From Laetmonice hystrix (Eukaryota), in assembly GCA_965235115.1 (NCBI GenBank), contig OZ249442.1, positions 25,172,001 to 25,236,000 on the forward strand: a DNA stretch of 64,000 bases. Direction: 5' to 3'. The notes under the pieces are model-generated. The model had not been told where the DNA came from. It saw only the letters and a list, made by a program, of their open reading frames with translations, and did no database searches. The position numbers and the translations under genes were made by a program. This document shows positions 5,396 to 62,139 of this stretch, piece after piece (position 1 is the first letter of the stretch; each line of letters begins with the position of its first letter).

Positions 5396-5549
5396 ATGCA
5401 CGGGCATAAAGGCTCAGGCATCTCATATGTCGGGTGTCGAGTTGCGTCATTTGGCCTGTTCCTGCTGCTGCTGCTACTGTTATGTTGGGGTAGCTGTTGG
5501 GTTGAAGACTTGAAGACTCGTTGTTGGAATTCCAATATACTTTATTGTG
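5396..5549 (+). CDS. Candidate first coding exon (signal peptide) of the LRP-like gene
   Basis: ttttctttAG immediately before ATG; MHGHKGSGISYVGCRVASFGLFLLLLLLLCWGSCWVE.. has n/h/c-region character; donor G|GTGAGG at 5550 is phase 1, compatible with 10660. The Leu run is partly a CTG microsatellite, so this could be chance. Confidence 0.45.
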
Positions 5550-17871: not shown

Positions 17872-18004
17872 AGTTCGTGGCGAGCCGTCGGTGTGGCAGT
17901 CGACGTCCGCCAGGGCCTCATGTTCTGGACAGATATAGGTACCGACGGGCGGGGCATCTATCGGGCCCATCTCAACGGCACGGGCTCACAGCGGATTGTT
18001 GCCG
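17872..18004 (+). CDS. Exon: propeller 1, SSWRAVGVAVDVRQGLMFWTDIG..RIVA
   Basis: ttttctcttgcAG / G|GTACGT; FWTD motif. Confidence 0.92.
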
Positions 18005-21000
18005 GTACGTGCTGTCATACAGGCCTTGTAAAACTGCTCCGAGGGCGAGTATCAAAAACATTATGTCAAAAATTGTACGTGCCCTTACCGCTTTCACTGC
18101 TACTATCTGATACCATCTAAGAAATTTGCCGCAATAAATATTCAGGTTACTATATTTTGACCAAGATTATTTTCCATTCTGAGGCAAGGAGAAAGAGCTA
18201 GGTGAATCGCCCGACCCACTACAAAGTTAGGAAAAAGTCTAGTCAAGCCTTTTCAACTGGTCTAATCCTCTGTCCAAACACCAATACTGCAACCCTACTG
18301 GTCGGAACCTGCACTGAATGTGGGACCTGCACAGAATGTGCATACACTAATTGTACCATACTGGTCGGGACCTGCACTGAGTGTGCATACACTAATTGTA
18401 CCATAATGGTCGGGACCTGCACTGAATGTGCATACACTAATTGTACCATACTGGTCGGGACCTGCACTGAGTGTGCATACACTAATTATACTGGTCGGGA
18501 CCTGCACTGAATGTGCATACACTAATTGTACCTTAATGGTCGGGACCTGCACTGAATGTGCATACACTAATTGTACCATACTGGTCGGGACCTGCACTGA
18601 GTGTGCATACACTAATTGTACCATAATGGTCGGGACCTGCACTGAATGTGCATACACTAATTGTACCATACTGGTCGGGACCTGCACTGAATGTGCATAC
18701 ACTAATTATACTGGTCGGAACCTACACTGAGTGTGCATACACTAATTGTACCATACTGGTCGGGACCTGCACTGAGTGTGCATACACTAATTGTACTGGT
18801 CGGGACCTGCACTGAATGTGCATACACTAATTGTACTGGTCGGGACCTGCACTGAATGTGCATACACTAATTGTACCATAATGGTCGGGACCTGCACTGA
18901 ATGTGCATACACTAATTGTTGTTTTATCATATCTCTCTCCCCCAGTCACTGGTAACGTAGGAGAAATTAATTCCACGTTTTATCCCTGGGTCCATGTTAG
19001 ATAAGACAAGCTTTGTTTACGGCTTTGTGGTGAATCGCTTACTGTAAAATCTTATCAGACCTGGGCGGGACGGGAGGCGGGACGGGAGGCGGGGTGGGAG
19101 GCGGGACGGGAGGTGGGACGGGAGGCGGGACGGGAGGCGGGGTGGGATGTGGGACGGGAGGCGGGACGGGAGGCGGGACGGGAGGCGGGACGGGAGGCGG
19201 GGTGGGAGGCGGGGTGGGAGGCGGGGTGGGTGCACATTTATGTTTGCTTTACACCGTAACCTTAAGATAATTGCGGTCGTATCTAATATGTTTATGGATA
19301 ATGACATCATTATGATGATGGTGTATCTAATATCTGTTTATGGATAATGACATCATTATGATGATGGTGTATCTAATATCTGTTTATGGATAATGACATC
19401 ATGATGATGATGGTGTATCTAATATCTGTTTATGGATAATGACATCATTATGATGATGGTTTGTCTAATATCTTACCCAGACGTCGGAAGATCTAATGGG
19501 TTGTCTCTGGACTGGACGGTCCTGCACGTTTACTGGACGGACGAGGAACGGCAAACAATAGAAATGTGTGACTACCACGGCAGCAAGAGAAAGATCGTCA
19601 TTCACACAGGTCTGCGCTGGCCGCGGGGCATCGTTATCGACCCTGGACCGGGGTCAGTTCAACCTTCTATTGTTTCGGTCATCTTAGACTCTGGCATTGG
19701 GGATGGGGGTGTGGTGGGGAGTCTTTGAATAGTCCATATTAGGTGTGGGATGTGGGGCCGCAGTGGATCCGTAGTCCCTGCATCCTGAACACATGGTTTC
19801 TCATCTCAAGGTTTATAACATCCATTACGTCAAGTTTGTTAGTTACTTACTGTAAGTTTAACATCCTGAACACATGGTTTCTCATCTCAAGGTTTATATC
19901 ATCTCCATCCATTACGTCAAGTTTGTTAGTTACTTACTGTAAGTTTAACATCCTGAACACATGGTTTCTCATCTCAAGGTTTATATCATCTCCATCCATT
20001 ACGTCAGGTTTGTTAGTTACTTACTGTAAGTTTAACATCCTGAACACATGGTTTCTCATCTCAAGGTTTATATCATCTCCATCCATTACGTCAAGTTTGT
20101 TAGTTACTTACTGTAAGTTTATCATCCTCAACACATGGTTTCTCATCTCAAGGTTTATATCATCTCCATCCATTACGTCAAGTTTGTTAGTTACTTACTG
20201 TAAGTTTATCATCCTCAACACATGGTTTCTCATCTCAAGGTTTATATCATCTCCATCCATTACGTCAAGTTTGTTAGTTACTTACTGTAAGTTTAACATC
20301 CTGAACACATGGTTTCTCATCTCAAGGTTTATATCATCTCCATCCATTACGTCAAGTTTGTTAGTTACTTACTGTAAGTTTAACATCCTGAACACATGGT
20401 TTCTCATCTCAAGGTTTATATCATCTCCATCCATTACGTCAAGTTTGTTAGTTACTTACTGTAAGTTTATCATCCTCAACACATGGTTTCTCATCTCAAG
20501 GTTTATATCATCTCCATCCATTACGTCAAGTTTGTTAGTTACTTACTGTAAGTTTAACATCCTGAACACATGGTTTCTCATCTCAAGGTTTATATCATCT
20601 CCATCCATTACGTCAAGTTTGTTAGTTACTTACTGTAAGTTTAACATCCTGAACACATGGTTTCTCATCTCAAGGTTTATATCATCTCCATCCATTACGT
20701 CAAGTTTGTTAGTTACTTACTGTAAGTTTAACATCCTCAACACATGGTTTCTCATCTCAAGGTTTATATCATCTCCATCCATTACGTCAAGTTTGTTAGT
20801 TACTTACTGTAAGTTTAACATCCTGAACACATGGTTTCTCATCTCAAGGTTTATATCATCTCCATCCATTACGTCAAGTTTGTTAGTTACTTACTGTAAG
20901 TTTAACATCCTGAACACATGGTTTCTCATCTCAAGGTTTATATCATCTCCATCCATTACGTCAAGTTTGTTAGTTACTTACTGTAAGTTTAACATCCTGA

Positions 21001-24000
21001 ACACATGGTTTCTCATCTCAAGGTTTATATCATCTCCATCCATTACGTCAAGTTTGTTAGTTACTTACTGTAAGTCTAACATCCTCAACACATGGTTTCT
21101 CATCTCAAGGTTTATATCATCTCCATCCATTACGTCAAGTTTGTTAGTTACTTACTGTAAGTTTAACATCCTGAACACATGGTTTCTCATCTCAAGGTTT
21201 ATATCATCTCCATCCATTACGTCAAGTTTGTTAGATACTTACTGTAAGTTTAACTGACCAGGTTTAACTGTCCCTCGCTGCTGCCGAGACGTATCACCCC
21301 AATCACATCCAATCCCCTAATGGGAAGAGTCTGAACGGGTGGGTTCAAACACCAAGTGAAGGATGAGACTAAGACAATTGGTTGAGAGCTAAAGTAATGA
21401 GACAAAAGCGTAGGTCGGGACGGCAGGAAAGTGAATTGGCTTAAAGAGGTTTGGCGGAGGAGGAGCGGAGGTTCGGTACATCGTCTGATAGGTTGAGGAA
21501 TTTGTTAGCTTCAAGAATAAAGTAGTCTAGAAGTCTTCGGCCCAAGTTGGAAACATGGAGTACCTAGAAGAGATTTTGTATGACTATTCGGCTTTTCTGA
21601 CTATTAAATTGGCATGTAGAGAGATAGGCGGCTGTGATACTGCATGAGACTTCTACAATCACAATAATTATTGTTTCCGTAATCGCTGTGGATTTATAAG
21701 ATGTGATTTGGACACTTTTGCCTGACATATCATAATTGCCATACAGTTGGGTTATTCTTTCATTTTTATCCATTGCCAAATGGCTCGAAGATATATTATT
21801 GATGTAGGCCTACATAGCCTGCAGTTACTGGTTGGATGTGTTACAGGGTTTTGTACTGGGGCGACCAGGGAACACGGCAGATAGAACGTTCCTATCTGGA
21901 TGGTTCCGACCGGCACGTGGTCGTCGGTACGGACTTGGTGTGGCCGAATCAACTAGGCATCAGCCACACGACCAGGTACGTACAGGGGTGTGGCAGGGTG
22001 GCTTGGGGATTGGGGGTGGCGTTATCAGCAATGAAAGCACTCCGGGGAGTTATTGAAAGGGGCAACTCATGATCCCTGGGTAGTACTTCTAGCAGATTTG
22101 TTGGTGGGTTGGTGAGTCATGGTGGGTGGAGGCGGAGGGCTAGCTGTAACCTCCCAGTATGCCGCAGCCTGCAGCCCAGGAGGCTGGGATAGGGACTGTG
22201 GGATACTGGGATAGGGACTGTGGGATACTGGGATACTGGGATACTAGAGGTAGACACTAACGCTCCGAGATGAGATGATAAATGTCTGTTAACCTAATTA
22301 AATAGGAATCTCTCTCAGGTACCAGTCAGGATTATCTCTTCTCGTAGTGATTATCTCAAGGCTGTATTCGTATACTTTATGACGATGTCTGTTAACCTAA
22401 TTCAATCTCTCTCAGGTACCATTAATGATTATCTCTTCTCGTAGTGATTATCTCATGGCTGTATTCGTATACTTTATGACGATGTCTGTTAACCTAATTC
22501 AATAGGAATCTCTCTCAGGTACCAGTCAGGATTATCTCTTCTCGTAGTGATTATCTCATGGCTGTATTCGTATATACTTTATGACGATGTCGTCCTCTCC
22601 GTACTGAAGGTAAGAGAATTCTCGAGCAATGTGTGAACATCGACCAGCACAGAGGTCGTGTAGACATCTCATGCCAAGGTCGACTGTACCGTCAAACGTT
22701 CTACACGTGCCCCTCCCCATCCATCCCCAAACTCCCGTGTTTCGCTACATTTCCAATACCCCCTCTCCACCCGAATTGTTTCAGGAGGCTGTATTGGGTT
22801 GACGCCTGTTTCAGGAGGCTGTATTGGGTTGACACCTGTTCCAGGAGGCTGTATTGGGTTGACACCTGTTTCCGGAAGCTGTATTGGGTTGACACCTGTT
22901 TCAGGAGGCTATATTGGGTTGACACATGTTCCAGGAGGCTGTATTGGGTTGACACCTGTTTCAGGAGGCTGTATTGGGTTGACACCTGTTCCAGGAGGCT
23001 GTATTGGGTTGACGCCTGTTTCAGAAGGCTGTACTGGGTTGACACATGTTTCAAGAGGCTGTATTGGGTTGACACCTGTTTCAGGAGGCTGTATTCGGTT
23101 GACACCTGTTTCAGGAGGCTGTATTGGGTTGACACATGTTTCAAGAGGCTGTATTGGGTTGACACCTGTTTCAGGAGGCTGTATTCGGTTGACACCTGTT
23201 TCAGGAGGCTGTATTGGGTTGACACCTGTTTCAGGAGGCTGTATTGGGTTGACGCCTGTTTTAGGAGGCTGTACTGGGTTGACACCTGTTTCAGGAGGCT
23301 GTATTGGGTTGACACCTGTTTCAGGAGGCTGTATTGGGTTGACGCCTACACGGTGACGATCGAATCGTGTGATCTTGACGGCGGATCCCGTCGGAGGGAC
23401 CGGCGACTGGTAGAGACGGCCTACTCGGCGCCAATCTACGGCCTGGCTGTGGTCGGTAACACGGCCTACATCAGTACCTGGTATGACGGCGCCGTGTACT
23501 CGGTGGTCCTCGACCTGCTGCTGCCAGCCGCTGACAGTAGTCCTCTCACAGTACTGGCTGACCACCTCACTCAGGGAGAAATCTTCAGTGTGGCTGTCGC
23601 TAATATCAACACCCAGCCTCAGAGTGAGTATCCGCTGCTTCAGGTTTATGGCGTAGATTTTGGTTTCGGTTATACGGGTAAATGTAACTCGTGATGAAGG
23701 AATCCTTTATCACTGGTGGCAGTTGTTTCCTCTGTTACAGTCAGAATATCTCCTTTTTTATCTGTGATGTCTGTGTCCTCAGTTACAGCTGACAGTAAGC
23801 GTCCTTTGTTACGTCCTCAGTTACAGCTTACAGTAAGCGTCCTTTGTTACGTGTAACAGTTGTGTCCTCAGTTACAGCTGACAGTAAGCGTCCTTTGTTA
23901 CGTCCTCAGTTACAGCTGACAGTAAGCGTCCTTTGTTACGTCCTCAGTTACAGCTGACAGTAAGCGTCCTTTGTTACGTGTAACAGTTGTGTCCTCAGTT

Positions 24001-27000
24001 ACAGCTGACAGTAAGCGTCCTTTGTTACGTGTAACAGTAGCGTCCTCAGTTACAGCTTACAGTAAGCGTCCTTTGTTACGTGTAACAGTAGCGTCCTCTG
24101 TTACAGCTGACAGTAAGCGTCCTCTGTTACAGCTGACAGTAAGTGTCCTCTGTTACAGCTGAGAGTAAGTGTCGTCTGTTACAGCTGAAAGTAAGCGTCC
24201 TCTGTTACAGCTGACAGTAAGTGTCCTCTGTTACAGCTGACAGTAAGTGTCCTCTGTTACAGCTGAAAGTAAGCGTCCTCTGTTACAGCTGACAGTAAGT
24301 GTCCTCTGTTACATCTGACAGTAAGTGTCCTCTGTTACAGCTGACAGTAAGTGTCCTCTGTTACAGCTGACAGTAAGTGCAGTCCGGAAGCGTCCTCTGG
24401 CTGTTCCCACATTTGTCTCGTGACTGCTGGCGCCACCTACAAGTGTGCTTGTCCCACGTATGGGTCTCTTGTCCTGGGTCCAGATGGCAAGACGTGTCAA
24501 GGTGAGATTTCACTTTACAAAGGTAGCACAGAAAGAAATATTCCAGCAAAATTTCCCATTCCTACAGTTTTTTGGTTCTGTTTTGAGTTTTGAATTGGAT
24601 ATTATAGTAAAAGTTTTTACATGGAAAAATTGTTTTTACTTCATCAAAATTAGTGAATGAAAAGGTCTTAATAACCATGGCGGGGCCATGTCCTCGCCTT
24701 GGAATCTTCAGTCATCCATGAATGCAGCACACTGCACTACGTTCATTAAAGTCCGTCACCGTGACCTAGCGTGACCTAGCGTGACCTAGCGTGACCTTCC
24801 GTGACCTACCGTGAGGGATTATTGTGGCGATTTAGACATTTATAGAGCAACGGATTGCCGAACATAGTGTTTGTGCACTGACCGTACTTCTGGCTAATTA
24901 ACTATCCTATTTAATCTATTTAATGTTAACACAACCGTAACTTCTAAACGGCCTGAGGAAAATGTAGACAGTTTTTAAAAAAATATTGTAGGCAACGACA
25001 AAATGTTGCCAAAATTAATTTGAATTTTGCGCGTTACGAGGCTCTGTTACGGTGATAGTACACAGGCCTGCGTCACACACCTCCATCAATGTAAACTTCA
25101 CGAGGCTCTGTTACGGTGACAGTACACAGGCCTGCGTCACACACCTCCATCAATCTGATTATTTATTTGTTTTTTTTAACAATTTCATTTGTTCGAAAGG
25201 CATATATATTTGGATGGCTGTGTTAACTCGATTGGTGGTAAGTCCACGCTGGTGGTGTGGTCAATAGACAGTTCCATTATGTGATGACCTCACTGCCCTG
25301 TCGCCTGGAGCAGAGAACTAGACGGAGAACTCTGTAGTCTACGGCTCGGGGAGAGTGCTGATAACCAACGTCTAACTACTTCAATCAACTCAATCTCCTT
25401 CATCGTGTAATCTAGTCTTCAAACCGTCTCCGACCTGCTGTATCAAACGTCTCCCCGCCGTCTTATATAAATCATTGACCTCATGTTGTTGTGACGTGGT
25501 GTGGGACCTGCTGTATCAAACCTCGCCGTCTTATATAAATCATTGACCTCATGTTGTTGTGGCGTGGTGTGGGACCTGCTGTATGAAACGTCTCCTCGCC
25601 GTCTTATATAAATCATTGACCTCATGTTGTTGTGGCGTGGTGTGGGACCTGCTGTATCAAACGTCTCCTCGCCGTCTTATATAAATCATTGACCTCATGT
25701 TGTTGTGGCGTGGTGTGGGACCTGCTGTATCAAACGTCTCCTCGCCGTCTTATATAAATCATTGACCTCATGTTGTTGTCACGTGGTGTGGGACCAGCTG
25801 TATCAAACCTCGCCGTCTTATATCATTGACCTCATGTTGTTGTGGCGTGGTGTGGGACCTGCTGTATCAAACGTCTCCTCGCCGTCTTATATAAATCATT
25901 GACCTCATGTTGTTGTGGCGTGGTGTGGGACCTGCTGTATCAAACGTCTCCTCGCCGTCCTATACATGTATAAATCATTGACCTCATGTTGTTGAGAATG
26001 AAGAGACGATATAAACGCTTGTTCCCAACGTGGCAAGCGGTGGACCTGCCCTGAATCACCAGGGAGGGCGGGGGCCTTCGTGTGCTCAGAAAGGATGAAC
26101 ATTCCGAATCGCTTGGCAATAAAAAAAATGTACAAATCGGTTTAAAATTGGAGCAGTGTCGGGTAACACGGGACCGACTTTGCTTCCTTCCGTGGCCGGC
26201 AGTTCCATTAACGACTCCTCCGATACAGACTTGCCGCCCGACCGCCTGCCCTCAAGCAAACACTTTTTTGGCTCTTCTCTCTGAGAATTATTTGTAGCCA
26301 ATACGAAGCTGCCCCAATTTCTTGTGTGTGTCTCATATAGGATGCGTAATGACAAAAGCCAAGGAAAGGTTCTATTTTCGTTGGCATCTTCAAAGCGTCA
26401 GGCAATAGAAACGGTTTCCCACCTTTAAGTGGGTCAAAGGAGGCATCAATAGGAGTCTGGTCGTCCGATCAATGTACGTCCTGGTCGTAACATTCACACC
26501 GACACAATCACAGGTTGGGTGGCCGTCGGTACGGTGTGTTGTGACATACTGGGGATGACAACATGTAGCCAGGCCAGGCTCTCTCATAGGTTTTTGTTAA
26601 AGTGAACATGTGTACGAGCACAGCTATTGTTGACATCGGACATGATGCTGCCTCTCCGACATGTCAATAATCATTCACGAGCGTATTGAGGAGGTTTGGG
26701 GAGGCGAGCGTATTGAGGAGGTTTGGGGAGGCGAGCGTATTGAGGAGGTTTGGGGAGGCGAGCGTATTGAGGAGGTTTGGGAAGGCGACAGTATTGAGGA
26801 GGTTTGGGGAGGCGAGCGTATTGAGGAGGTTTGGGGAGGCGTATTGAGGAGGTTTGGGGAGGCGTATTGAGGAGGTTTGGGGAGGCGAGCGTATTGAGGA
26901 GGTTTGAGGAGGCGAGCGTATTGAGGAGGTTGGGGAGGCGACCGTATTGAGGAGGTTTGGGGAGGCGTATTGAGGAGGTTTGGGGAGGCGTATTGAGGAG

Positions 27001-42000: not shown

Positions 42001-45000
42001 CCCGCGGACTCTCCCCCCCTCCGGACATTTGTCTGAAGGACTTATCTCCCGCGGACTCCCCCCCGGACATTTGTCTGAAGGTCATATCTCCCGCGGACTC
42101 CCCCCCCCCGGACATTCGTCTGAAGGACATATCTTCCGCGGACTCCCCCCCCCCCCGGACATTTGTCTGAAGGACATATCTCCCGCGGACTCCCCCCCGG
42201 ACATTCGTCTGAAGGTCATATCTCCCGCGGACTCCCCCCCCCCGGACATTCGTCTGAAGGACATATCTTCCGCGGACTCCCCCCCCGGACATTTGTCTGA
42301 AGGACATATCTCCCGCGGACTCCCCCCCCCCCTCCGGACATTTGTCTGAAGGTCATATCTCCCGCGGACTCCCCCCCCCCCGGACGTTTGGCTGAAGGAC
42401 ATATCTCCCGCGGACTCCGCCCCCCCCCCCCTCCGGACATTTGTCTGAAGGTCATATCTCCCGCGGACTCTCCCCACACGGGCCCACACCCCATCCTGTT
42501 TATTGCCCACACCCCATCCTGTTTATTACCCACACCCCATCCTGTTTATTACCCACACCCCATCCTGTTTATTGTCCACACCCCATCCTGTTTATTGCCC
42601 AGACCCCATCCTGTTTATTGTCCACACCCCATCCTGTTTATTACCCACACCCCATCCTGTTTATTGCCCAGACCCCATCCTGTTTATTGCCCAGGCCCCA
42701 TCCTGTTTATTACCCACACCCCATCCTGTTTATTACCCAGACCCCATCCTGTTTATTACCCACACCCCATCCTGTTTATTACCCACACCCCATCCTGTTT
42801 ATTGCCCAGACCCCATCATGTTTATTGCCCAGACCCCATCATGTTTATTACCCACACCCCATCCTGTTAATTGTTTATATCAGTGACTTTTTATGCAAAA
42901 TTATATTGACTATCCGTACGCATGTATGTTAACGAGGTATGGCAAAAAGACATATAGATGAAACTATTATAAAACGTGTGTATTCACACACATACATTGT
43001 AAGTACATTTAACAATACTCAATGTATCACACACATATGTAGTATGTTTTCATTTCATATATTAGAAATACAATGATTAATTGACGAAAGTTTATTCCTA
43101 GAAGTTCAGTAGTCGGAAAGTTTACACGTCTTTCCAAGGTCCCTAAATGTTATACATATTGTTGTTGTTGTTGATATGATTTGGCCCTGAAACAGTAAAC
43201 ACCTCGAGAGAGTTAGTTATTACCTTTGGGAGATGGTAAAGCTCGCATTGTCTGGTTCGTGTTTTTGATTCATATTGAAACATGTAAACACGTTATTTTG
43301 TTATTCTGTTATTCTGACCTGCCCCTGTAGTGTATGCTACAGTGGTCACATGACCCCCTGCATAGTCCATTTGTGATAATGAATAAAGAAATGCTAACAA
43401 TGTTTAATTAGTAATTAGTAATTAAGCGGCCGTGTTGTGACAGGTTCCGACGAATGCAGTGACCACCAACACAACTGTAGCTTTATGTGCGTGTCCGTGC
43501 CCAATGGACGCCGCTGTACGTGTCCACTCGGCATGCAGCTGGCGTCAGACGCTAGATCATGTTTAGATGGTAAGTGATCACAAACATGCAGTGACCACCA
43601 ACACAACTGTAGCTTTATGTGCGTGTCCGTGCCCAATGGACGCCGCTGTACGTGTCCGCTCGGCATGCAGCTGGCGTCAGACGCTAGATCATGTTTAGAT
43701 GGTAAGTGATCACAAACATGCAGTGACCACCAACACAACTGTAGCTTTATGTGCGTGTCCGTGCCCAATGGACGCCGCTGTACGTGTCCGCTCGGCATGC
43801 AGCTGGCGTCAGACGGTAGATCATGTTTAGATGGTAAGTGATCACAAACATGCAGTGACCACCAACACAACTGTAGCTTTATGTGCGTGCCCGTGCCCAA
43901 TGGACGCCGCTGTACGTGTCCGCTCGGCATGCAGCTGGCGTCAGACGGTAGATCATGTTTAGATGGTAAGTGATCACAAACATGCAGTGACCACCAACAC
44001 AACTGTAGCTTTATGTGCGTGTCCGTGCCCAATGGACGCCGCTGTACGTGTCCGCTCGGCATGCAGCTGGCGTCAGACGGTAGATCATGTTTAGATGGTA
44101 AGTGATCACAAACATGCAGTGACCACCAACACAACTGTAGCTTTATGTGCGTGCCCGTGCCCAATGGACGCCGCTGTACGTGTCCGCTCGGCATGCAGCT
44201 GGCGTCAGACGGTAGATCATGTTTAGATGGTAAGCTCTCACCAATATGTAATCCCAAACTGGTATAGGGTTTCTATGAGGACACATAATTGCTTATAAAA
44301 AGTAAATGGAACAATATAGTTTCAGACGATACGTCCAGAGACGTAAGGACACATGTAGTACGACCCTGGTAGGAGAAATGCCGCTTGTTTTATTGTAACA
44401 AACTGTGTGTTAACACGTCAACTCTCCGTTTGTCTCAGAGCACGTGTGGACGGTAGCAGACTGGGTGAGATGTCCTCAGAAATGTCACCGGTTTGGTCAC
44501 TGTGCGCATCTCGTCTCAACCTCCGTCTACCGCTGTGTGTGTGGCGACGGTTTCCATGGAGACGGACACACTCAATGTGAAGGTAGTAACAATGACGTCA
44601 TGGTACGATAGGGGTGTGTCAGAACACGTTGTGGTTCGTTCAGGATTGATTCCAGGCCTCTGTGTAGGTCTACTTGTAGGTGGGTTAGTATCGGGGGTGT
44701 GGGTCTCAGTGTAAACAGGGAGTATCATGGGGTTTATTATAGAATTATTATGATTCCAGGCCTCTGTGTAGGTCTACTTGTAGGTGGGTTAGTATCGGGG
44801 GTGTGGGTCTCAGTGTAAACAGGGAGTATCATGGGGTTTATTATAGAATTATTATGATTCCAGGCCTCTGTGTAGGTCTACTTACTTGTAGGTGGGTTAG
44901 TATCGGGGGTGTGGGTCTCAGTGTAAACAGTATCAGGGGGCTTATTATAGGGGGTTATACACAAGCGGAGGGTAGCTTAGATCTAGATATCTGACATGCA

Positions 45001-48000
45001 CTACCGAGGCGAGTTATCCTACCCCAGAGTGTGGCCGTAATAAAACTTCTCATGTCGGCATCAACACATAACGTACCTGGTAGACTACCACACCAGCAGG
45101 TGCTGTTGCCGTTTTTACATGTGCCAAAATGATTACATAACTATTGACCTACCACTTGATACGATGTCGTATACCTTGTTTTTTACATGTGCCATAATGA
45201 TTACATAACTATTGACCTACCACTTGTTGTCGTATACCTTGTTTTTTACATGTGCCATAATGATTACATAACTATTGACCTACCACTTGTTACGATGTCG
45301 TATACCTTGTTTTTTTTACATGTGCCATAATGATTACATAACTATTGACCTACCACTTGTTACGATGTCGTATACCTTGTTTTTTTACATGTGCCATAAT
45401 GATTACATAACTATTGACCTACCACTTGTTACGATGTCGTATACCTTGTTTTTTTACATGTGCCATAATGATTACATAACTATTGACCTACCACTTGTTA
45501 CGATGTCGTATACCTTGTTTTTTTTACATGTGCCATAATGATTACATAACTATTGACCTACCACGTGTTACGATGTCGTATACCTTGTTTTTTACATGTG
45601 CCATAATGATTACATAACTATTGACCTACCACTTGTTACGATGTCGTATACCTTGTTTTTTTTACATGTGCCATAATGATTACATAACTATTGACCTACC
45701 ACTTGTTACGATGTCGTATACCTTGTTTTTTTTACATGTGCCATAATGATTACATAACTATTGACCTACCACGTGTTACGATGTCGTATACCTTGTTTTT
45801 TACATGTGCCATAATGATTACATAACTATTGACCTACCACTTGTTACGATGTCGTATACCTTGTTTTTTACATGTGCCATAATGATTACATAACTATTGA
45901 CCTACCACTTGTTGTCGTATACCTTGTTTTTTTACATGTGCCATAATGATTACATAACTATTGACCTACCACTTGTTGTCGTATACCTTGTTTTTTTACA
46001 TGTGCCATAATGATTACATAACTATTGACCTACCACTTGTTACGATGTCGTATACCTTGTTTTTTACATGTGCCATAATGATTACATAACTATTGACCTA
46101 CCACTTGTTGTCGTATACCTTGTTTTTTTACATGTGCCATAATGATTACATAACTATTGACCTACCACTTGTCGTATACCTTGTTTTTTACATGTGCCAT
46201 AATGATTACATAACTATTGACCTACCACTTGATACGATGTCGTATACCTTGTTGGCAGCCTGTCCTGTAGACACGTACAAGGCGTCACTTAGCAACGCGT
46301 CATGCACGACGTGTCCCCCAGGCTCGGGTACCATTGGTTGGACCGGAAGCACGACTTGTATGTGTGACGATCCAAACTTTGACTTTAGCGGCGGCAAGTG
46401 TACTTTTCACGTCATAGGTAAGTAATACCAACAACGAAACCGTTAGTAAACCAAACGTGATCATGTTGCTGCTCTCATCCCCAGAAATCATTGTCAACTT
46501 ACCGGCACGATTGGCTCTCGTTACCAAGTTGACCAAAGTTAATTTGGTAAAATGAGGAAATTTTAAAACATTTTCACACATAGGAAAGTTTGATGTATAG
46601 GATTGCGATATGTTCTATAGGGGGGTTGCTATCCGTCTAGGTATATCGCACGTGGTAACTTACACCCCACGAAATTTGGTCTAAAGTAACGATCCATAGC
46701 CCTGACCTTATCCCTAACCCCTATCCCCGGTCCCGACACCTCCCAAAAACAAACATTTTGTGGTAAAGTTAGCTCCCTTTGGCCCTTAGATTGGATTATG
46801 AAACAGGATTTGTCGCTAAAGCTGATCATTGTCTCGTCCCCTTGTTAATCTCCAACACATTAATCAGGACCATAAGGCGTTTAAAATGATAAATGGTGAC
46901 TTTGAAAGATAATGGAAACGAATGATACTTTCATTTCAGAGGATGTCGCCGAGAATGGGAGTGAAATTGGCGAAACCTCTCGTGGTACGTGGTAAGATTG
47001 TCTGATCGTCTGCCCGTGTTGGTGGCGCTAGGTGGCGCTAGGTGGCGCTAGGTGTCGGCCGATCGATGTGCGCCACAGAAAGACAGGAAAACATCGGCTT
47101 GGGGGGGGGGGGGTCATCAAAAAGAATACTCTTTGTACGCTTGTGAAAATGTTGAACCACCCCTGAGTTTAATATGTCCTAGAATCTTATTGTAGCGAGT
47201 CTGTTGGCAGTATTGATATCCTGACTGTGTGATGGTAACGGTGATTTCTGACGTATTAGTTGTAGGCCTATACCTGATTACTTCCACTGGCAGGTTGCAA
47301 TGTGACACCCCTGTTGTTGAGGCAGCCGCTCTATGGGAGACTCGAGTGTGTGGTGGACGCGAGCAGGGGGCGATTATGTCGGACATTGTGTGACAGCGTT
47401 AACTTTTACCTGAACCCACGGCCCGAGTACAGCGCCATCTACTGTCTGCCGACTGGCGTCTGGCAGAACAACTTTCCTTCAGACTACGTCCTCAAGGCTT
47501 GCCTTCGTACGTATATGGGTTAACGGCATCATGTTCTGGTTTGGTTCTAGTTACGGGGCCTTGGCGCCGCCAGAAATAGCTATAGTTTATAATAGTGACG
47601 AGCCTATATTTTGATCATGAGCTATGCTGACTCCAATGTGAACTATTTTTCAATTTATTTTTTAATAGGAAAAACCTCAGAACGTATGATTGTGAGGAGG
47701 TTATTTTTCTGGTTCACTGGGCCGTGTAATTCCAAGAACAACACCCTAAAGCGGGCGATAATTGGGGCAATGTTGGCCGTACTCGAGCAAGACGGGCTTT
47801 GTTCGCGCTCGTACGGCGGTCGTGACGTCTGCCTTAGCTGTGACGCCACTTTCCTTGACGTCACGTGCCGCGTAGGGCGCAGGCGCAGATCATCGAGTAG
47901 GCGCAGGAGTGCTGACCTCTTGGTACTGTGGACAGTCCGTGCCAATTCAAGGTCAGAACACGTTTGGTATATGTCTGAGTACATAGAGTACTATCACGTA

Positions 48001-51000
48001 CCAGCCATTGGTCATTGGTTTGGTACTATATGTCTGAGTACATAGAGTACTATCACGTACCAGCCATTGGTCATTGGTTTGGTATATGTCTGATTACATA
48101 GAGTACTATCACGTACCAGCCATTGGTCATTGGTTTGGTATATGTCTGATTACATAGAGTACTATCACGTACCAGCCATTGGTCATTGGTTTGGTGTCTG
48201 ATTACATAGAGTACTATCACGTACCAGCCATTGGTCATTGGTTTGGTGTCTGATTACATAGAGTACTATCACGTACCAGCCATTGGTCATTGGTTTGGTA
48301 TATGTCTGATTACATAGAGTACTATCACGTACCAGCCATTGGTCATTGGTTTGGTATATGTCTGAGTACATAGAGTACTATCACGTACCAGCCATTGGTC
48401 ATTGGTTTGGTATATGTCTGAGTACATAGAGTACTATCACGTACCAGCCATTGGTCATTGGTTTGGTATATGTCTGAGTACATAGAGTACTATCACGTAC
48501 CAGCCATTGGTCATTGGTTTGGTGTCTGATTACATAGAGTACTATCACGTACCAGCCATTGGTCATTGGTTTGGTGTCTGATTACATAGAGTACTATCAC
48601 GTACCAGCCATTGGTCATTGGTTTGGTATATGTCTGATTACATAGAGTACTATCACGTACCAGCCATTGGTCATTGGTTTGGTATATGTCTGATTACATA
48701 GAGTACTATCACGTACCAGCCATTGGTCATTGGTTTGGTATACGTCTGATTACATAGAGTACTATCACGTACCAGCCATTGGTCATTGGTTTGGTATATG
48801 TCTGATTACATAGAGTACTATCACGTACCAGCCATTGGTCATTGGTTTGGTATATGTCTGAGTACATAGAGTACTATCACGTACCAGCCATTGGTCATTG
48901 GTTTGGTATATGTCTGAGTACATAGAGTACTATCACGTACCAGCCATTGGTCATTGGTTTGGTATATGTCTGAGTACATAGAGTACTATCACGTACCAGC
49001 CATTGGTCATTGGTTTGGTGTCTGATTACATAGAGTACTATCACGTACCAGCCATTGGTCATTGGTTTGGTGTCTGATTACATAGAGTACTATCACGTAC
49101 CAGCCATTGGTCATTGGTTTGGTATATGTCTGATTACATAGAGTACTATCACGTACCAGCCATTGGTCATTGGTTTGGTATATGTCTGATTACATAGAGT
49201 ACTATCACGTACCAGCCATTGGTCATTGGTTTGGTATATGTCTGAGTACATAGAGTACTATCACGTACCAGCCATTGGTCATTGGTTTGGTATATGTCTG
49301 AGTACATAGAGTACTATCACGTACCAGCCATTGGTCATTGGTTTGGTGTCTGAGTACATAGAGTACTATCACGTACCAGCCATTGGTCATTGGTTTGGTA
49401 TATGTCTGAGTACATAGAGTACTATCACGTACCAGCCATTGGTCATTGGTTTGGTATATGTCTGAGTACATAGAGTACTATCACGTATCAGTCATTGATC
49501 ATTCATAGGGCATCAAAGTTAGTCTCTCTGAAATAGGAGTAACTTTAAGATATAAGATGCAACCATGTGTTTCTAACATATCGGTTTAAAAAAATGGTTG
49601 GCTTCATTAAAATGATTGGAAGAGTTGAATGCCAATCTCTATGGTTATGAATTTAGACTGATACCGCATGGCATTTGACTGATCTGATAGGGGGATGCGT
49701 TCAAGGACAATTTTTGGACGCATGACAAGACATAATCTTGAATGCTACCAGGGCCATTGTCTAGGCCTCGCTAATATCGCGAAGAATCCACTGATCTATG
49801 TAATCTTGAATGCATGATTTTATATTCCCGGGGTTTTGTGTTTTTTCCATACGGGTAGCATAGAGAAAAGCCTGTCGACGGCCGAGCAGAGGGTGAACGA
49901 TCGAGTAGCTCAGCTTCAAGCCCGTTTTGACATGGGTCTCACCTTCCAGGCGGGTGATGGCACGTATGTAAGTGTGTGGCAGTCAGGCAGTGTGGCGCCA
50001 CTTGTACTACGATGTGGTCACGGAGCGGTCAACAGTTCCAATATCTGTCGTAAGGATTGCTTCAACACATTGTTTTGACAGTTTTTACACTTTATTTTTT
50101 TTTTTTGAAAAATAATAATACATGTAATAAAATATCCAGGTCGGGGGCATTACACAGGTCGGGCGGGGACGCTAAACACGTAACTTTTTTTATTTGGCCT
50201 AATTGTAGTATTTCGTTGTTATTGGATAGTAATTTTAATAAGGGAATATAGGGTAGCAATCACACGTGAGGTTGGCGGGATAGTGTCGTCTCCATGGTTT
50301 CCTATTGTTTTCAGTTGTGTGTCCTGTTGGTACGTACAAGTCTGGAGATTGGTGTGAAGATTGTCCACCAGGGGGCTATCAGGACGAGGAGGGCCAGGAA
50401 GACTGCAAGGTTTGCCCTGGACACGGGACTACCTCCCCACCCGGCGCCTTCCGACAGACACAGTGTAAGCATCCTTGTGGCAGTTATACCAGCGAATAGC
50501 AATCCGCGACGATACTAATTATAGCATTGCCCCCTTCAATGACGTCACATTTTAAATGTGCACAATTAAAATACTCGGATCAACATCACCCACGGAGCAG
50601 CTGTTCACTGTGTACAAACAAACACGCGACCGGGTGGAGAATCTACAAATAGATATTGTGCTTAAACTACGGTCCGAAAAATTGGTGTTTGATGCCAACA
50701 GGATGCTAACAACAAACTAAGCAATGCTGTTACGGACTGTGTAAAAGTGATGACAGTAGATGACAACCCCCAGAATGAAAGACGTTCTCAAAACCAAAAC
50801 CAAAACGACCCCCCCCCCCCCATGCAGTGCTGGGATCGTGGAACCATGCAGTTTCTTCTTTGCAATTTTACCTCAACCATTTTATAGAAAGTAGATCTAT
50901 ATTCGTGCAGTGTATCCTGGTTTACCTCTATTTTTTCCAAAGCAACTTAGCATTTACAGGGGCGGATCCAGAGGGGTTGTTGCCGGGGGGGGGGGGGGGG

Positions 51001-54000: not shown

Positions 54001-55902
54001 CCAAACCTGTAGGGACAGGCCAAACCTGTAGGGTCAAGCCAAACCTGTAGGGACAAGCCAAACTTGTAGGGACTAGCCAAACCTGTAGGGACAGGCCAAA
54101 CCTGTAGGGACAGGCCAAACTTGTAGGGACGAGCCAAACCTGTAGGGACAAGCCAAACCTGTAGGGACAAGCCAAACCTGTAGGGACAGGCCAAACCTGT
54201 AGGGACAGGCCAAACCTGTAGGGACAGGCCAAACCTGTAGGGACAGGCCAAACCTGCAGGGACAGGCCAAACCTGTAGGGACAAGTCAAACAGGCCAAAC
54301 TTGTAGGGACGAGCCAAACCTTTAGGGACGAGCCCAACCTGTAGGGACAAGCCAAACCTGTAGGGACGAGCCAAACCTGTAGGGACAGGCCAAACCTGTA
54401 GGGACAGGCCAAACCTGTAGGGACAGGCCAAACCTGTAGGGACGAGCCAAACCTGTAGGGACAAGCCAAACCTGTAGGGACAGGCCAAACCTGTAGGGAC
54501 AGGCCAAACAGGCCAAACTTGTAGGGACAGGCCAAACCTGTAGGGACGAGCCCAACCTGTAGGGGCAGCCCAAACCTGTAGGGACAAGCCAAACCTTTAG
54601 GGACAGGCCAAACCTGTAGGGACAAGCCAAACCTGTAGGGACAGGCCAAACCTGTAGGGACAAGCCAAACCTGTAGGGACGAGCCAAACCTGTAGGGACG
54701 AGCCAAACCTGTAGGGACAGGCCCAACCTGTAGGGACAGGCCAAACCTGTAGCGATAAGCCAAACTTGTAGGGACAGGCCAAACCTGTAGGGACAAGCCC
54801 AACCTGTAGGGACGAGCCCAACCTGTAGGGACGAGCCAAACCTGTAGGGACAGGCCCAACCTGTAGGGACAGGCCAAACCTGTAGCGATAAGCCAAACTT
54901 GTAGGGACAGGCCAAACCTGTAGGGACAAGCCCAACCTGTAGGGACGAGCCAAACCTGTAGGGACAGGCCAAACCTGTAGGGACGAGCTCAACCTGTAGG
55001 GACAAGCCAAACCTGTAGGGACAGGCCAAACCTGTAGGGACAAGCCAAACCTGTAGGGACAGGCCAAACCTGTAGGGACAGGCCAAACCTGTAGGGACGG
55101 GCCAAACCTGCAGGGACAGGCCAAACCTGTAGGGACAGGCCAAACCTGTAGGGACAGGCCAAACCTGTAGGGACAGGCCAAACCTTTAGGGACAGGCCAA
55201 ACCTGTAAGAGTCGGATTAAAATGTTTCAGTCGGAATTCTTTGTGATTTTTTTCTATGTAAACTGGGAATCGGGGAAATGGACAGCGGTGGCGGTTTCTG
55301 CATGGTTCTAGCCGTACTTATTTATATTTGCAGGTTACCTAAGTTTGAACAGCCCCCCGGCGACCCGAAACTGTGTGATCATAGGCGCGGGAGGGGTGGT
55401 GTTAGCACTACTGGCCGTACTCCTGGCTTACCTCTGCCGGAGACACTTCCGACATCACCGCCACTTCACCGGAAAAATGTGTAAAACGGGCCCGTCCGAG
55501 TCGGAGAGTCCGTACGTTATAGAAATACGTACAAACAGTCACAGTGACATTGCCTACGAGGAGATCAGGGAGGAAGATCCCCCGAAAGCCATACACCGGG
55601 AGGCTCAACAACAACAGCAGCAGGAAATCTGCACCAAAGACAGTATTCTCAGTAAAAGCCTAGAGTTGGCAAAGGTGAAAAACAGGTCAGCGTGTTCGGC
55701 GGAGACGTTTGACAAATTACAGCCCGTGATGACGTCATACAGCAGGGAGGAGATATGTTTACAGGTTCAGTCGGTGCTCCAGGCTGAGGCTGGCGGTGAC
55801 GAAACCGAGGCTGAAGTGGCACATAGCGAGGAGGACCCAGAGACGGAAAGTAGCGTGGCTCTTTTAGAAGGCACAAATCAACAGGAGAAAAACCAGGCAT
55901 AG
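17872..55902 (+). CDS. Multi-exon gene (22 confidently placed exons): LRP-like type I membrane receptor, 3x(YWTD propeller-EGF)-EGF-ephrin-like Cys repeat-sushi-like-unnamed domain-Cys repeat-TM-tail
   Basis: Hand-spliced exons 17872-18004,19481-19652,21847-21975,23325-23623,24367-24501,30061-30315,31876-32062,33734-33968,35686-35872,36606-36743,37496-37667,38165-38401,39661-39851,40272-40478,43444-43569,44439-44582,46259-46417,47294-47506,47669-47951,49859-50049,50315-50464,55334-55902. All introns GT..AG, all phases compatible, total 4512 nt (divisible by 3) ending in TAG; YWTD-type motifs and EGF cysteine patterns in the expected order. Confidence 0.9.
18295..18920. repeat. 45-bp minisatellite, about 14 copies
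   Basis: ctggtcgggacctgcactgaatgtgcatacactaattgtaccata. Confidence 0.93.
19065..19230. repeat. 12-bp G-rich repeat (gggaggcgggac), about 14 copies
   Basis: direct inspection. Confidence 0.93.
19481..19652 (+). CDS. Exon: propeller 1, DVGRSNGLSLDWTVLHVYWTD..PRGIVIDPGPG
   Basis: cttacccAG / GG|GTCAGT; YWTD motif and LRWPRGIVIDP. Confidence 0.95.
19783..21255. repeat. 87-bp minisatellite, about 17 copies
   Basis: 29-aa periodicity in the 504-aa ORF. Confidence 0.95.
21847..21975 (+). CDS. Exon: propeller 1, GVLYWGDQG..IERSYLDGSDR..WPNQLGI
   Basis: ttacAG / AG|GTACGT; typical YWTD repeat. Confidence 0.95.
22775..23345 (+). repeat. 30-bp acceptor+exon-start array, 19 copies
   Basis: cctgtttcAG|gaggctgtattgggttgaca; the last copy continues into the exon. 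Confidence 0.95.
23325..23623 (+). CDS. Exon: propeller 1 end, RLYWVDAYTVTIESCDLDG..IYGLAVVG..NTQPQ
   Basis: last tttcAG of the 30-bp array / A|GTGAGT; YWVD motif. The true 5' boundary is ambiguous because upstream acceptors are in frame. Confidence 0.88.
23775..24378 (+). repeat. 26-50-bp acceptor+exon-start array, about 18 copies
   Basis: gtgtcctctgttacAG|ctgacaGTAA; the last copy continues into the EGF1 exon. Confidence 0.93.
24367..24501 (+). CDS. Exon: EGF-like 1 (CSPEASSGCSHICLVTAGATYKCACPTYGSLVLGPDGKTC)
   Basis: six-Cys LRP-type EGF, phase 1-1, G|GTGAGA donor. Confidence 0.95.
25430..25992. repeat. ~65-73-bp minisatellite, about 8 copies
   Basis: gacctgctgtatcaaacgtctcctcgccgtcttatataaatcattgacctcatgttgttgtggcgtggtgtgg. 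Confidence 0.9.
26677..27365. repeat. 27-bp purine-rich minisatellite, about 26 copies
   Basis: gagcgtattgaggaggtttggggaggc. Confidence 0.93.
27800..28585. repeat. ~52-58-bp minisatellite, about 14 copies
   Basis: gatatcgattggtgagataacgagtgcgtgatggcacaataactgagtggtc. Confidence 0.93.
29135..30073 (+). repeat. ~50-bp acceptor+exon-start array, 19 copies
   Basis: gagccccacgtttatttttgttggtttcAG|aaccggaggaggt; the last copy continues into the exon. Confidence 0.95.
30061..30315 (+). CDS. Exon: propeller 2 start, EPEEVLLYAD..AVGYDPIKQQVYWSD..
   Basis: last ttggtttcAG of the ~50-bp array / G|GTAAGA; YWSD motif. Confidence 0.93.
30484..31347. repeat. 36-bp minisatellite, about 24 copies
   Basis: tgaaaatatagacttgccacaggttcccactgacta. 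Confidence 0.95.
31876..32062 (+). CDS. Exon: propeller 2, GLYVDWLHRRLYFCNMG..KPRAIYLDLTKG
   Basis: ttctctctcaccAG / GG|GTAACA. Confidence 0.95.
32491..33004. mobile_element. MITE with ~28-bp TIRs and internal tandem repeats (PIF/Harbinger-like)
   Basis: Left cctgttccggctagatatgtctgaacggct; right agccgtttggacgtatctagccggaacacc; partial second copy at 63296-63415. Confidence 0.75.
33734..33968 (+). CDS. Exon: propeller 2, YMYYTDWGVRPRVMRADLNG..NPNGLVVYDRWLYLVD..
   Basis: ggtttcAG / GAG|GTAGGC; YYTDWG motif. Confidence 0.95.
34275..35300. repeat. ~44-48-bp minisatellite, about 23 copies
   Basis: gtagtctaacacctgctcactatgatacacacattgtaaatctt. Confidence 0.93.
35515..35705 (+). repeat. 59-bp acceptor+exon-start triplication
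   Basis: AG ends at 35567, 35626 and 35685, each followed by gtttacatcccgtttggtct. Confidence 0.93.
35686..35872 (+). CDS. Exon: propeller 2 end, VYIPFGLAAKEGQLFYTDW..CNPTGLFYSPTRHSLP
   Basis: third cattttgtAG / CAG|GTCGGT; PFGL..FYTDW motif. Confidence 0.92.
35827..36402 (+). repeat. 81-93-bp exon-end+donor+(CCCTAA)n array, 7 copies
   Basis: donors at 35873, 35960, 36047, 36140, 36221, 36302, 36389. Confidence 0.95.
36606..36743 (+). CDS. Exon: EGF-like 2 (CGEAHCSDICVP..ARCMCSEDGGLVLGMDGRTC)
   Basis: six-Cys pattern, phase 1-1, G|GTGAGC. Confidence 0.95.
37023..37482. repeat. 90-bp tandem repeat, about 5 copies, ending at an acceptor
   Basis: direct inspection. Confidence 0.9.
37496..37667 (+). 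CDS. Exon: propeller 3 start, ESFLLLTD..VAVTYDAITRDVYWSDLH
   Basis: gtttattacAG / AG|GTCAGT; YWSD motif. Confidence 0.94.
38165..38401 (+). CDS. Exon: propeller 3, IDGMALDGRGRHLYWTG..LDQPRAVVLDLDQ
   Basis: ttctttttttctgcAG / AG|GTAGCG. Confidence 0.95.
38440..39392. repeat. 44-bp minisatellite, about 21 copies
   Basis: aagtcaaactagaaccactgacaacaaattaggtctgaggacga. Confidence 0.95.
39661..39851 (+). CDS. Exon: propeller 3, YMYWTEYG..SFLDGSN..WPNALAIAGGKLYVAD..LNMD
   Basis: ttttgttctAG / G|GTAAAT. Confidence 0.95.
40272..40478 (+). CDS. Exon: propeller 3 end, HIFGMAVTGRNVYYTDW..RPGALYFH
   Basis: ccgtccAG / CAG|GTACAG; YYTDW motif. Confidence 0.94.
40617..41007. mobile_element. 391-bp MITE, 13-bp perfect TIR (CAGACCTGCCAAA), 6-bp TSD CGATGT
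   Basis: TIRs start at 40617 and end at 41007; CGATGT at 40611-40616 and 41008-41013. Confidence 0.85.
41135..42470. repeat. ~42-48-bp minisatellite with variable poly-C, about 30 copies
   Basis: ggacatttgtctgaaggacatatctcccgcggact(c)n. Confidence 0.93.
42480..42868. repeat. 24-bp minisatellite, about 16 copies
   Basis: cacaccccatcctgtttattaccc. Confidence 0.93.
43444..43569 (+). CDS. Exon: EGF-like 3 (ECSDHQHNCSFMCVSVPNGRRCTCPLGMQLASDARSC)
   Basis: gtgttgtgacAG / G|GTAAGT; six-Cys pattern. Confidence 0.93.
43454..44234 (+). repeat. 132-bp tandem array of the EGF3 exon body plus donor, 6 copies
   Basis: GTAAG donors at 43570, 43702, 43834, 43966, 44098, 44230. Confidence 0.97.
44439..44582 (+). 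CDS. Exon: EGF-like 4 (CPQKCHRFGHC..YRCVCGDGFHGDGHTQC)
   Basis: ccgtttgtctcAG / G|GTAGTA; CxCxxGFxGDG signature. Confidence 0.93.
45110..46252. repeat. ~62-69-bp minisatellite, about 17 copies, ending 6 nt before an acceptor AG
   Basis: ttttttacatgtgccataatgattacataactattgacctaccacttgttacgatgtcgtataccttg. Confidence 0.93.
46259..46417 (+). CDS. Exon: ephrin-receptor-like Cys-rich repeat (CPVDTYK..CTTCPPGSGT..GSTTCMC)
   Basis: cttgttggcAG / G|GTAAGT; CPxxTYK..CxxCPxG..T..GSxxCxC pattern. Confidence 0.9.
47294..47506 (+). CDS. Exon: sushi/CCP-like domain (..PLYGRLECV..CRTLC..IYCLPTGVWQ..AC)
   Basis: ccactggcAG / C|GTACGT; G..C, C..G.W and terminal C pattern; domain name inferred. Confidence 0.8.
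47669..47951 (+). CDS. Exon: unnamed extracellular domain with polybasic RRRRSSSRRRS site
   Basis: ttttttaatAG / AG|GTCAGA; open frame with FTGPC..LC..VC..VTC followed by an Arg cluster. Confidence 0.82.
47960..49490. repeat. 53/57-bp minisatellite, about 27 copies, starting about 10 nt after a donor
   Basis: tttggtatatgtctgagtacatagagtactatcacgtaccagccattggtcattgg. Confidence 0.95.
49859..50049 (+). CDS. Exon: SIEKSLSTAEQRV..LRCGHGAVNSSNIC
   Basis: acceptor after ttttttccatacgggtAG, C|GTAAGG donor; phase 2 to 1 fits both neighbours. Confidence 0.82.
50315..50464 (+). CDS. Exon: GCC2/GCC3-type (ephrin-like) Cys repeat (CPVGTYK..CEDCPPGGYQDEEGQEDCKVCP..GAF)
   Basis: cctattgttttcAG / T|GTAAGC; splicing T+GT recreates the conserved terminal Cys. 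Confidence 0.92.
51071..51496. mobile_element. Degraded inverted-repeat element (possible MITE)
   Basis: GGCCCGTATGCATAAA versus the reverse complement of TTTGTGCATCCGGGCC (2 mismatches), with patchy similarity further inward. Confidence 0.4.
52165..53080. repeat. 37/46-bp minisatellite, about 22 copies
   Basis: ctgcatggaaccattggtgggccgtggtctatccctca(cataaac). Confidence 0.93.
53555..55205. repeat. 19-bp minisatellite, about 86 copies
   Basis: ccaaacctgtagggacagg. Confidence 0.95.
55334..55902 (+). CDS. Terminal exon: TM helix (VIIGAGGVVLALLAVLLAYLC, 55375-55437), basic stop-transfer RRHFRHHRH, cytoplasmic tail, TAG
   Basis: tttatatttgcAG acceptor, phase 1; 21-aa hydrophobic stretch followed by basic residues. 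Confidence 0.9.
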
Positions 55903-61946: not shown

Positions 61947-62139
61947 NNNNNNNNNNNNNNNNNNNNNNNNNNNNNNNNNNNNNNNNNNNNNNNNNNNNNN
62001 NNNNNNNNNNNNNNNNNNNNNNNNNNNNNNNNNNNNNNNNNNNNNNNNNNNNNNNNNNNNNNNNNNNNNNNNNNNNNNNNNNNNNNNNNNNNNNNNNNNN
62101 NNNNNNNNNNNNNNNNNNNNNNNNNNNNNNNNNNNNNNN
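61947..62139. other. Assembly gap (193 N)
   Basis: run of n. Confidence 1.

Follow-up and report, generated by a model that had tools for sequence, protein, structure and literature searches.

A three-propeller LRP-like receptor gene of Laetmonice hystrix without detected LDL-A repeats, and its putative SEA-like stalk

Propeller-EGF receptors are central in lipoprotein uptake, Wnt signaling and synapse formation, and to our knowledge nearly all of those described have LDL-A repeats and tails that bear an NPxY or a PPPSP motif. What kind of receptor, then, is encoded by a gene of Laetmonice hystrix in which three propeller-EGF units are found with none of these features? The gene lies on contig OZ249442.1 of assembly GCA_965235115.1 (627 Mb in 35 contigs), in a stretch of 64,000 nucleotides (positions 25,172,001 to 25,236,000 of the forward strand) that was analyzed as a whole and is called the window here; coordinates are those of the window unless another frame is named. 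The product of the gene is a type-I membrane glycoprotein, 1,503 amino acids or more in length, with three propeller-EGF units, a fourth EGF module (EGF4), a Cys repeat, a CCP-like module, an unnamed domain modeled as α/β, a second Cys repeat, a transmembrane (TM) helix and a cytoplasmic tail. It is a member of a two-gene family in this genome, defined by the membrane-proximal cassette behind the propeller-EGF stack. We lean, by a modest degree, toward viewing its product as a furin-processed, two-chain, LDL-A-less LRP-like receptor.

The locus proves to be a genuine gene, intact and coding for a large receptor of the cell surface. Between repeat arrays, the + strand holds short open stretches with clear domain signatures, and 22 exons on that strand (17872–55902) splice to 4,512 nt, or 1,503 codons, the sole stop being the terminal one at 55900–55902. 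These exons were picked on GT-AG sites, with reading frame and a simple splice score as the sole criteria; three sequencing runs are on record for the organism, all from one study and none of RNA, and the junctions and transcript ends are thus predicted ones. Introns at the locus reach 5.5 kb. Those at module boundaries are all in phase 1, while those within the propellers and the unnamed domain are in phase 0, 1 or 2. The model opens at a strong phase-0 acceptor (17872) that falls within blade 1 of the first propeller, and hence the signal peptide and ~35 amino acids of that blade must lie upstream, on at least one further exon. No additional propeller or EGF exon was found when all exon peptides were compared by phmmer with the six-frame open reading frames (ORFs) of the window and the 100 kb upstream of it, and Pfam returned nothing for ten upstream ORFs. 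A candidate for the first exon, and only that, is an ATG ORF at 5396–5549 on the + strand, whose core (FGLFLLLLLLLCWGSCW) resembles a signal peptide; its GTGAGG donor is in phase 1 and could be joined to the phase-0 acceptor (17872) only through a further exon between them.

The propeller-EGF stack consists of three YWTD units of the six-bladed LRP type. In Pfam scans, which covered 20 model exons, Ldl_recept_b was found in 11 of 14 propeller exons (E 2.6e-10 to 0.07; five above the gathering cut-off), and FXa_inhibition, EGF_LRP2 or EGF in the EGF exons (best 5.9e-8). When single propeller exons were compared with solved chains, LRP4, LRP2 and LRP6 were matched at E 1e-22 to 1e-75, outranking nidogen and LDLR. 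Propeller 1 matches solved LRP4, LRP2 and LRP6 chains at E values down to 2.4e-75. It begins in exon 1 (17872–18004), which carries the first YWTD motif (MFWTD) behind the acceptor TTCTCTTGCAG/AGT and is placed by the in-frame model and a weak Ldl_recept_b match (E 0.044); exons 2–4 (19481–19652, 21847–21975 and 23325–23623) complete it, with Ldl_recept_b at E 2.6e-10, 5.7e-6 and 0.0094 and the scores of their junctions. The acceptor of exon 4 is the final copy in a 30-bp acceptor ladder, and its donor could alternatively be 23677 in place of 23623. EGF1, an LDLR-type post-propeller module, follows in exon 5 (24367–24501, phase 1-1; FXa_inhibition at E 5.9e-8, EGF_LRP2; donor AAG/GTGAGA). Propeller 2 (LRP4 chain, E 1.9e-22) occupies exons 6–9 (30061–30315, 31876–32062, 33734–33968 and 35686–35872), with Ldl_recept_b in exons 6–8 (best 3.8e-7), no match for exon 9 in the Pfam scan, and colinear exons in the paralogue described below; EGF2 is exon 10 (36606–36743, phase 1-1; FXa_inhibition and EGF_LRP2; donor AAG/GTGAGC). 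Propeller 3 (LRP4 chain, E 8.9e-46) occupies exons 11–14 (37496–37667, 38165–38401, 39661–39851 and 40272–40478) and is assigned by junction scores and by Ldl_recept_b in exons 13 and 14 (E 9.1e-7 and 0.019), the Pfam scan giving no such match for exons 11 and 12; an acceptor at 37439 in place of 37496 is possible for exon 11. EGF3, in exon 15 (43444–43569), is the first of six tandem copies, identified by translation of the array and by junction scores.

Behind this stack comes a run of modules of quite another kind. EGF4 (exon 16, 44439–44582, phase 1-1) has six Cys, with matches to EGF_3, EGF_2, cEGF and EGF that all fall below cut-off, and is placed by these and its junction scores. Exon 17 (46259–46417; donor TAG/GTAAGT) and exon 21 (50315–50464) encode the two Cys repeats of Ephrin_rec_like (GCC2_GCC3/TNFR-like) type; both exceed the PF07699 gathering cut-off of 23.1 bits, the first at 23.9 and the second at 46.0 (E 4.3e-12), and weak TNFR_ELAPOR1 matches occur in these repeats as well. 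Exon 18 (47294–47506) gave no match to the Pfam sushi model (PF00084) at E up to 1. We nonetheless read it as a CCP module with an extra disulfide, because an alignment with three relatives (40–48% identity, 19 invariant columns) keeps six Cys, one Trp and the Pro, Leu and Gly of a P-L-x-G turn invariant, and because its profile matches the CCP modules of MASP-1 (E 0.0019), E-selectin (0.028) and CD46 (0.037). The same exon has a weak HRM match (E 0.094), dismissed as chance. No vWA, pentraxin, CUB or MRH match was returned by Pfam for any scanned exon. Exon 22 (55334–55902) encodes a short stalk, the TM helix, a basic stop-transfer sequence, the tail and the stop codon, as judged from hydropathy, a motif scan and tail motifs held in common with one of the relatives. 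Its most hydrophobic 19-mer spans model residues 1328–1346 (TM helix ~1328–1348) and is followed by RRHFRHHRH; the model has this one TM segment, in type-I topology, and no signal peptide was found in it. The first-pass annotation had listed the same modules, and every one is present, in the same order and at the same coordinates. Its description of an LRP-type propeller/EGF stack joined to Ephrin_rec_like and sushi modules in a single-pass protein built from phase-1 symmetric exons is borne out by the Pfam and solved-chain matches, by hydropathy and by the boundary introns.

What remains is the unnamed domain, of ~156 amino acids, which is encoded by two exons: exon 19 (47669–47951) holds its first half, X1, and exon 20 (49859–50049) its second, X2, ending with the first Cys of the Cys repeat that follows. 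When 1.84 billion representative proteins were searched with X1 (93 amino acids), three unannotated exon-sized ORFs were found, at 47, 52 and 32% identity, and no annotated full-length protein. A fourth candidate, P0004 (781 amino acids), is a tandem-repeat ORF and no relative. A profile word search with the X1 alignment gave those three ORFs again and nothing more, and a search with the CCP profile added one ORF, P0005, which is known from the ORF alone. The relatives of the cassette in other samples are P0001–P0003, P0005, L018 and L020, and at least two samples other than this one have contigs with the whole C-terminal cassette (CCP, unnamed domain, Cys repeat, TM and tail). L020, the 4.8-kb contig of one of the X1 hits, with short introns, has an HYR domain (2.4e-17), a six-Cys CCP module, X1, X2, Ephrin_rec_like (1.1e-12, 47.9 bits) and a TM segment with tail, in that order. 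In the related sample ERZ26222911, two loci are found on separate contigs.

Two loci are likewise what profile searches of the Laetmonice genome return, the window gene and a paralogue at C7:20.62–20.636 Mb, 4.5 Mb away on the same chromosome. The paralogue is colinear with the window gene through EGF1, propellers 2 and 3, EGF3, the CCP module, the unnamed domain (with RVKR), Ephrin_rec_like (35.8 bits) and the TM segment; a Ser/Thr-rich mucin stretch of ~380 amino acids and an HYR domain (5.5e-14) replace EGF4 and the first Cys repeat of the window gene. In the paralogue a single exon encodes EGF3 together with the mucin stretch, and HYR and the cassette follow within 3 kb; this sharing of an exon speaks for propellers and cassette as parts of a single gene. 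That a colinear paralogue exists and that the cassette occurs elsewhere implies that the join predates the window gene. The suggestion of a lineage-specific chimera therefore holds as regards a mosaic built from phase-1 exons but not as regards a one-off event, given the paralogue, the cassette in other samples and the AlphaFold DB domain matches discussed below. The failure to recognize a named orthologue, on the other hand, was well founded, there being no annotated hit among the 1.84 billion representatives and no structural match among Swiss-Prot models; we found nothing relevant in the literature on this domain combination. As for the likeness to SVEP1 and SCUBE, the Ephrin_rec_like and CCP modules are indeed there, but the likeness goes no further than these common modules. 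At C7:20602392–20611298 (loci L025–L026, + strand), ~8 kb upstream of the paralogue's EGF1 exon, lies an uninterrupted ORF of 2,969 amino acids with the look of a Helitron-type transposon, having a helicase part and an endonuclease-like C-terminus; it is apparently intact and may sit within a 5' intron of the paralogue or in its flank.

What, then, might the unnamed domain be? Neither its halves nor those of the five relatives gave a credible Pfam match, and SEA (PF01390) was not matched even at E up to 10; no match to the sequences of solved chains was found. An Rpr2 match of X1 (E 0.037) was dismissed as chance. In the alignment of five X1 sequences, otherwise 24–49% identical, three Cys are invariant, and all five carry a basic R-x-K/R-R loop (RRRRSSSRRR, RRRRKRR, RQRR, RRRKR and RVKR) followed by a hydrophobic strand; X2 was aligned with its counterparts in L020 and the paralogue. 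The AlphaFold2 model of X1, built on the alignment, has a β-strand at residues 6–16, an α-helix at 24–40, a second strand at 62–67, a low-confidence basic loop and a third strand at 82–92 (mean pLDDT, the predicted local distance difference test score, 73). The loop RRRRSSSRRR of the window gene stands between β2 and β3 of this model. X2 is modeled as a helix (8–25) and short strands (28–31, 37–41 and 45–49; mean pLDDT 61). Taken together, the elements of X1 and X2 are predicted to follow the β-α-β-β-α-β order of SEA and SEA-like domains, and in these models of separate halves the basic loop takes the position of the turn at which mucin SEA domains self-cleave. The G/SVVV autoproteolysis motif is not present in the unnamed domain. 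The best fold matches of X1 include SEA domains, which are strongly over-represented in the top rows; Foldseek searches of the X1 model against the PDB, Swiss-Prot models and the ESM Atlas gave generic α/β rows only, and a language-model search for look-alikes gave nothing above 0.78. Among AlphaFold DB clusters, X1 matches A0A2G8KUY5, A0A2R2MKN2, A0A7M7N6Y6 and A0A210PDD8, all uncharacterized, with a probability of 1.00 for each of the first three and of 0.87 for the last (template-modeling score by query 0.45–0.74, identity 14–26%). These matches suggest that the domain probably occurs outside this lineage, in unstudied proteins. The four were compared by the predicted structure of X1 alone; at 407–1,222 amino acids, most are too short for three propellers, and the automatic naming of one as SCUBE3 suggests adjoining Ephrin_rec_like repeats.

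The first-pass annotation had also drawn attention to what the protein lacks, and here, too, its account stands. Strict and loose regular expressions found no LDL-A repeat in the window and the 100 kb upstream (164 kb), where a hidden Markov model (HMM) built from 20 LDL-A modules of the same genome reached a best E of only 0.49, as compared with 43 matches in a control locus; none of the genome's 150 best matches to PF00057 lies near the locus. The upstream LDL-A exons that would have spoken against the proposed architecture are thus not seen within 100 kb, although with an incomplete 5' end the absence is not absolute. The tail, acidic and 155 amino acids long, contains no NPxY, NPxF or PPP[ST]P by regular-expression search, as claimed for NPxY. 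Its motifs are YVIEI, YEEI (the sole YxxΦ) and EEICLQV, and two patterns recur in the tail of L020, Y[VI]I[EQ][IV] on the membrane side and EEICL[QE]V toward the C-terminus. NPxF motifs are seen in the relatives, as ENPNF in L020 (L020:3438–3875) and as YTNPAF in the paralogue (par 42963–43283, locus L027). With NPxF there and YEEI in the window gene, the family's members may have come to differ in their sorting signals.

How might such a receptor work? The propellers of LRP5/6 and LRP4 bind ligands directly. By analogy with these, or with nidogen, the three propellers would form the ligand-binding surface, and, LDL-A repeats being absent, we infer that it's the propellers themselves that would bind. 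On the models, the unnamed domain would be a SEA-like α/β sandwich in which a proprotein-convertase (furin-type) loop replaces the β2–β3 turn, and the conservation of the dibasic loop in such a stalk suggests furin-type cleavage into two chains joined via the split sheet. Furin cleavage inside a membrane-adjacent SEA-like domain is established for Notch S1 (PMC2726630) and has been proposed for KIAA1549 (PMC13570299). By analogy with Notch S1, LRP1 and the mucin SEA domain, a cut in the secretory pathway would split the protein into a large chain that binds ligand and a small one in the membrane, held together non-covalently, and the resulting stalk might be shed or pulled apart by force. Stalks with a structured N-terminal neighbor can work as proteolytic switches (PMC6586460), and the CCP module could be such a neighbor here. 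As judged from its motifs, the tail may mediate uptake, docking or signaling through YEEI and the conserved EEICLxV. A bolder extension, which we regard as speculative and on balance doubtful, is that the ~156-residue domain defines an as yet undescribed family of stalks, SEA-like "furin switches" always placed between a CCP module and a TNFR/Ephrin-like repeat, and that the two genes represent a new class of LDL-A-less two-chain invertebrate receptors whose ectodomain is freed by force or a second cleavage, in the manner of Notch or mucins.

Several less elaborate accounts of the locus deserve consideration. Were the gene a decaying, non-functional copy, the minisatellites that fill more than half of the window, and the three arrays that duplicate exon borders, might be thought to disrupt splicing; that all 22 exons are open, in frame and provided with usable splice sites, that Cys patterns and motifs are kept with respect to the relatives, and that the arrays leave one full exon copy at the correct edge make this the least probable of the alternatives. 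Hardly more probable is an ordinary LDLR/LRP member whose LDL-A cluster either is too divergent to be seen or sits in 5' exons more than 100 kb upstream. The gene does need at least one upstream exon, its introns are as long as 5.5 kb and tandem repeats make up 47% of the 100 kb upstream, but only ~35 residues of propeller 1 are missing, the regular-expression, HMM and PF00057 searches described above speak against it, exons of other genes (exosome-subunit-like and DHHC-like) appear 80–96 kb upstream, and the C-terminal parts of LDLR, LRP4 and LRP5/6 are quite different. We hold in about equally low regard, if a shade less so, the view that a secreted propeller-EGF protein has been mis-joined to a neighboring small receptor that begins at EGF4 or the first Cys repeat. 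Here the uninterrupted frame, the uniform phase 1 of the boundary introns and the paralogue, which keeps the order and has EGF3 in one exon with the mucin linker on the way to HYR and the cassette, must be set against junctions that are predicted ones throughout and whose splice scores are modest between EGF4 and the Cys repeat and between the CCP module and X1.

More weight, though still well short of an even chance, is due to the view that the architecture is right and the unnamed domain is not SEA-like and goes uncleaved, being some other or new α/β module whose basic loop binds heparan sulfate or lipid or serves as a flexible spacer. Against this view, the secondary-structure elements fit SEA in both order and length, SEA is strongly over-represented among the top fold rows, and the dibasic motif recurs at the same loop in five such divergent sequences. 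The furin-processed, two-chain receptor that we favor must for its part contend with several facts. The unnamed domain was folded as two separate halves, of which X2 is of low confidence, and co-folding the halves gave a score of 0.01 and a pLDDT of ~37, a run in which the alignments were unused and which counts neither for nor against the fold. YEEI is absent from the tails of L020 and the paralogue, which have NPNF and NPAF. The splice junctions and transcript ends are predictions, and the search for the first exon or exons gave no more than a candidate.

The closest points of comparison are LRP4, LRP5/6 and LRP2, which share with the window gene tandem six-bladed YWTD propeller-EGF units, a type-I TM segment and phase-1 module exons. 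They differ in the LDL-A, NPxY and PPPSP elements that the window gene lacks, and where they have LDL-A repeats or regions of O-linked sugar next to the membrane, the window gene has its CCP module, SEA-like domain and Cys repeat. Pro-EGF and Drosophila Cueball likewise combine propellers and EGF modules with a TM segment, and have no LDL-A repeats; these are set apart, by description, through having no Ephrin_rec_like/CCP/SEA-like cassette. Ephrin_rec_like repeats are common to the window gene and SVEP1, SCUBE1–3 and ELAPOR1/2, and SVEP1 also has CCP modules and HYR, the latter found in the paralogue and L020. On the other hand, SVEP1, SCUBE and ELAPOR have no YWTD propellers, SVEP1 and SCUBE are secreted and have no TM segment, whereas the window gene does, and the scanned exons contain neither the vWA and pentraxin domains of SVEP1, nor the C-terminal CUB domain of SCUBE, nor MRH. 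With the SEA and SEA-like domains of mucins (MUC1/3/12/13/16/17), TMPRSS proteases, Notch HD, KIAA1549, dystroglycan and EpCAM/Trop2, the unnamed domain shares its juxtamembrane place, Cys-rich flanks, the predicted order of its elements and a putative processing site in the β2–β3 turn, and the paralogue resembles the mucins in the mucin stretch upstream of its cassette. Unlike SEA, the unnamed domain has no Pfam SEA match and no G/SVVV, and has extra disulfides (three invariant Cys in X1), its fold having been modeled as halves.

The two genes thus belong to a small uncharacterized family, a variant produced by domain shuffling in an animal genome in which mosaic receptors abound. The window gene would stand as a conserved variant of the propeller-EGF receptor without LDL-A, NPxY or PPPSP, one that would bind its ligands by propellers alone. 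If the proposed processing is correct, it would be a fresh instance of a furin-cut juxtamembrane stalk, to be compared with those of Notch, mucins and KIAA1549. Mosaic receptors are common in such genomes; a furin-loop stalk behind LDL-A-less propellers, as suggested by the sequence, would be a concrete and testable feature. The stalk domain lacks a Pfam entry, and defining it would aid the annotation of orphan receptors in other animals.

The surroundings of the exons are dominated by repeats, tandem minisatellites accounting for 33,374 of the 64,000 bases of the window (52%). Three intronic minisatellites copy exon borders: that at 22777–23343 comprises ~19 copies of the exon 4 acceptor with its RLYWVD codons, that at 35827–36402 has the exon 9 donor seven times over, and that at 43454–44234 holds almost the entire EGF3 exon, donor included, in six copies. 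Since each EGF3 copy has a GTAAG donor and then an in-frame stop, one copy would be coded per transcript. A 193-N run, either a gap or a mask, stands downstream of the gene at 61947–62139. Outside the window, the nearest recognizable upstream coding sequences (L011–L013) are exons resembling a DHHC palmitoyltransferase at about –96 kb on the – strand and exons resembling an exosome RNase-PH subunit at –85 and –80.5 kb on the + strand; a gag-like ORF of 347 amino acids lies at about –41 kb. All of these were assigned by eye. Within the intron between exons 17 and 18, at ~46636–46751, lies an element of ~112 bp with at least 40 copies at 88–92% identity on many chromosomes, probably a family of short interspersed nuclear elements (SINE) or miniature inverted-repeat transposable elements (MITE).
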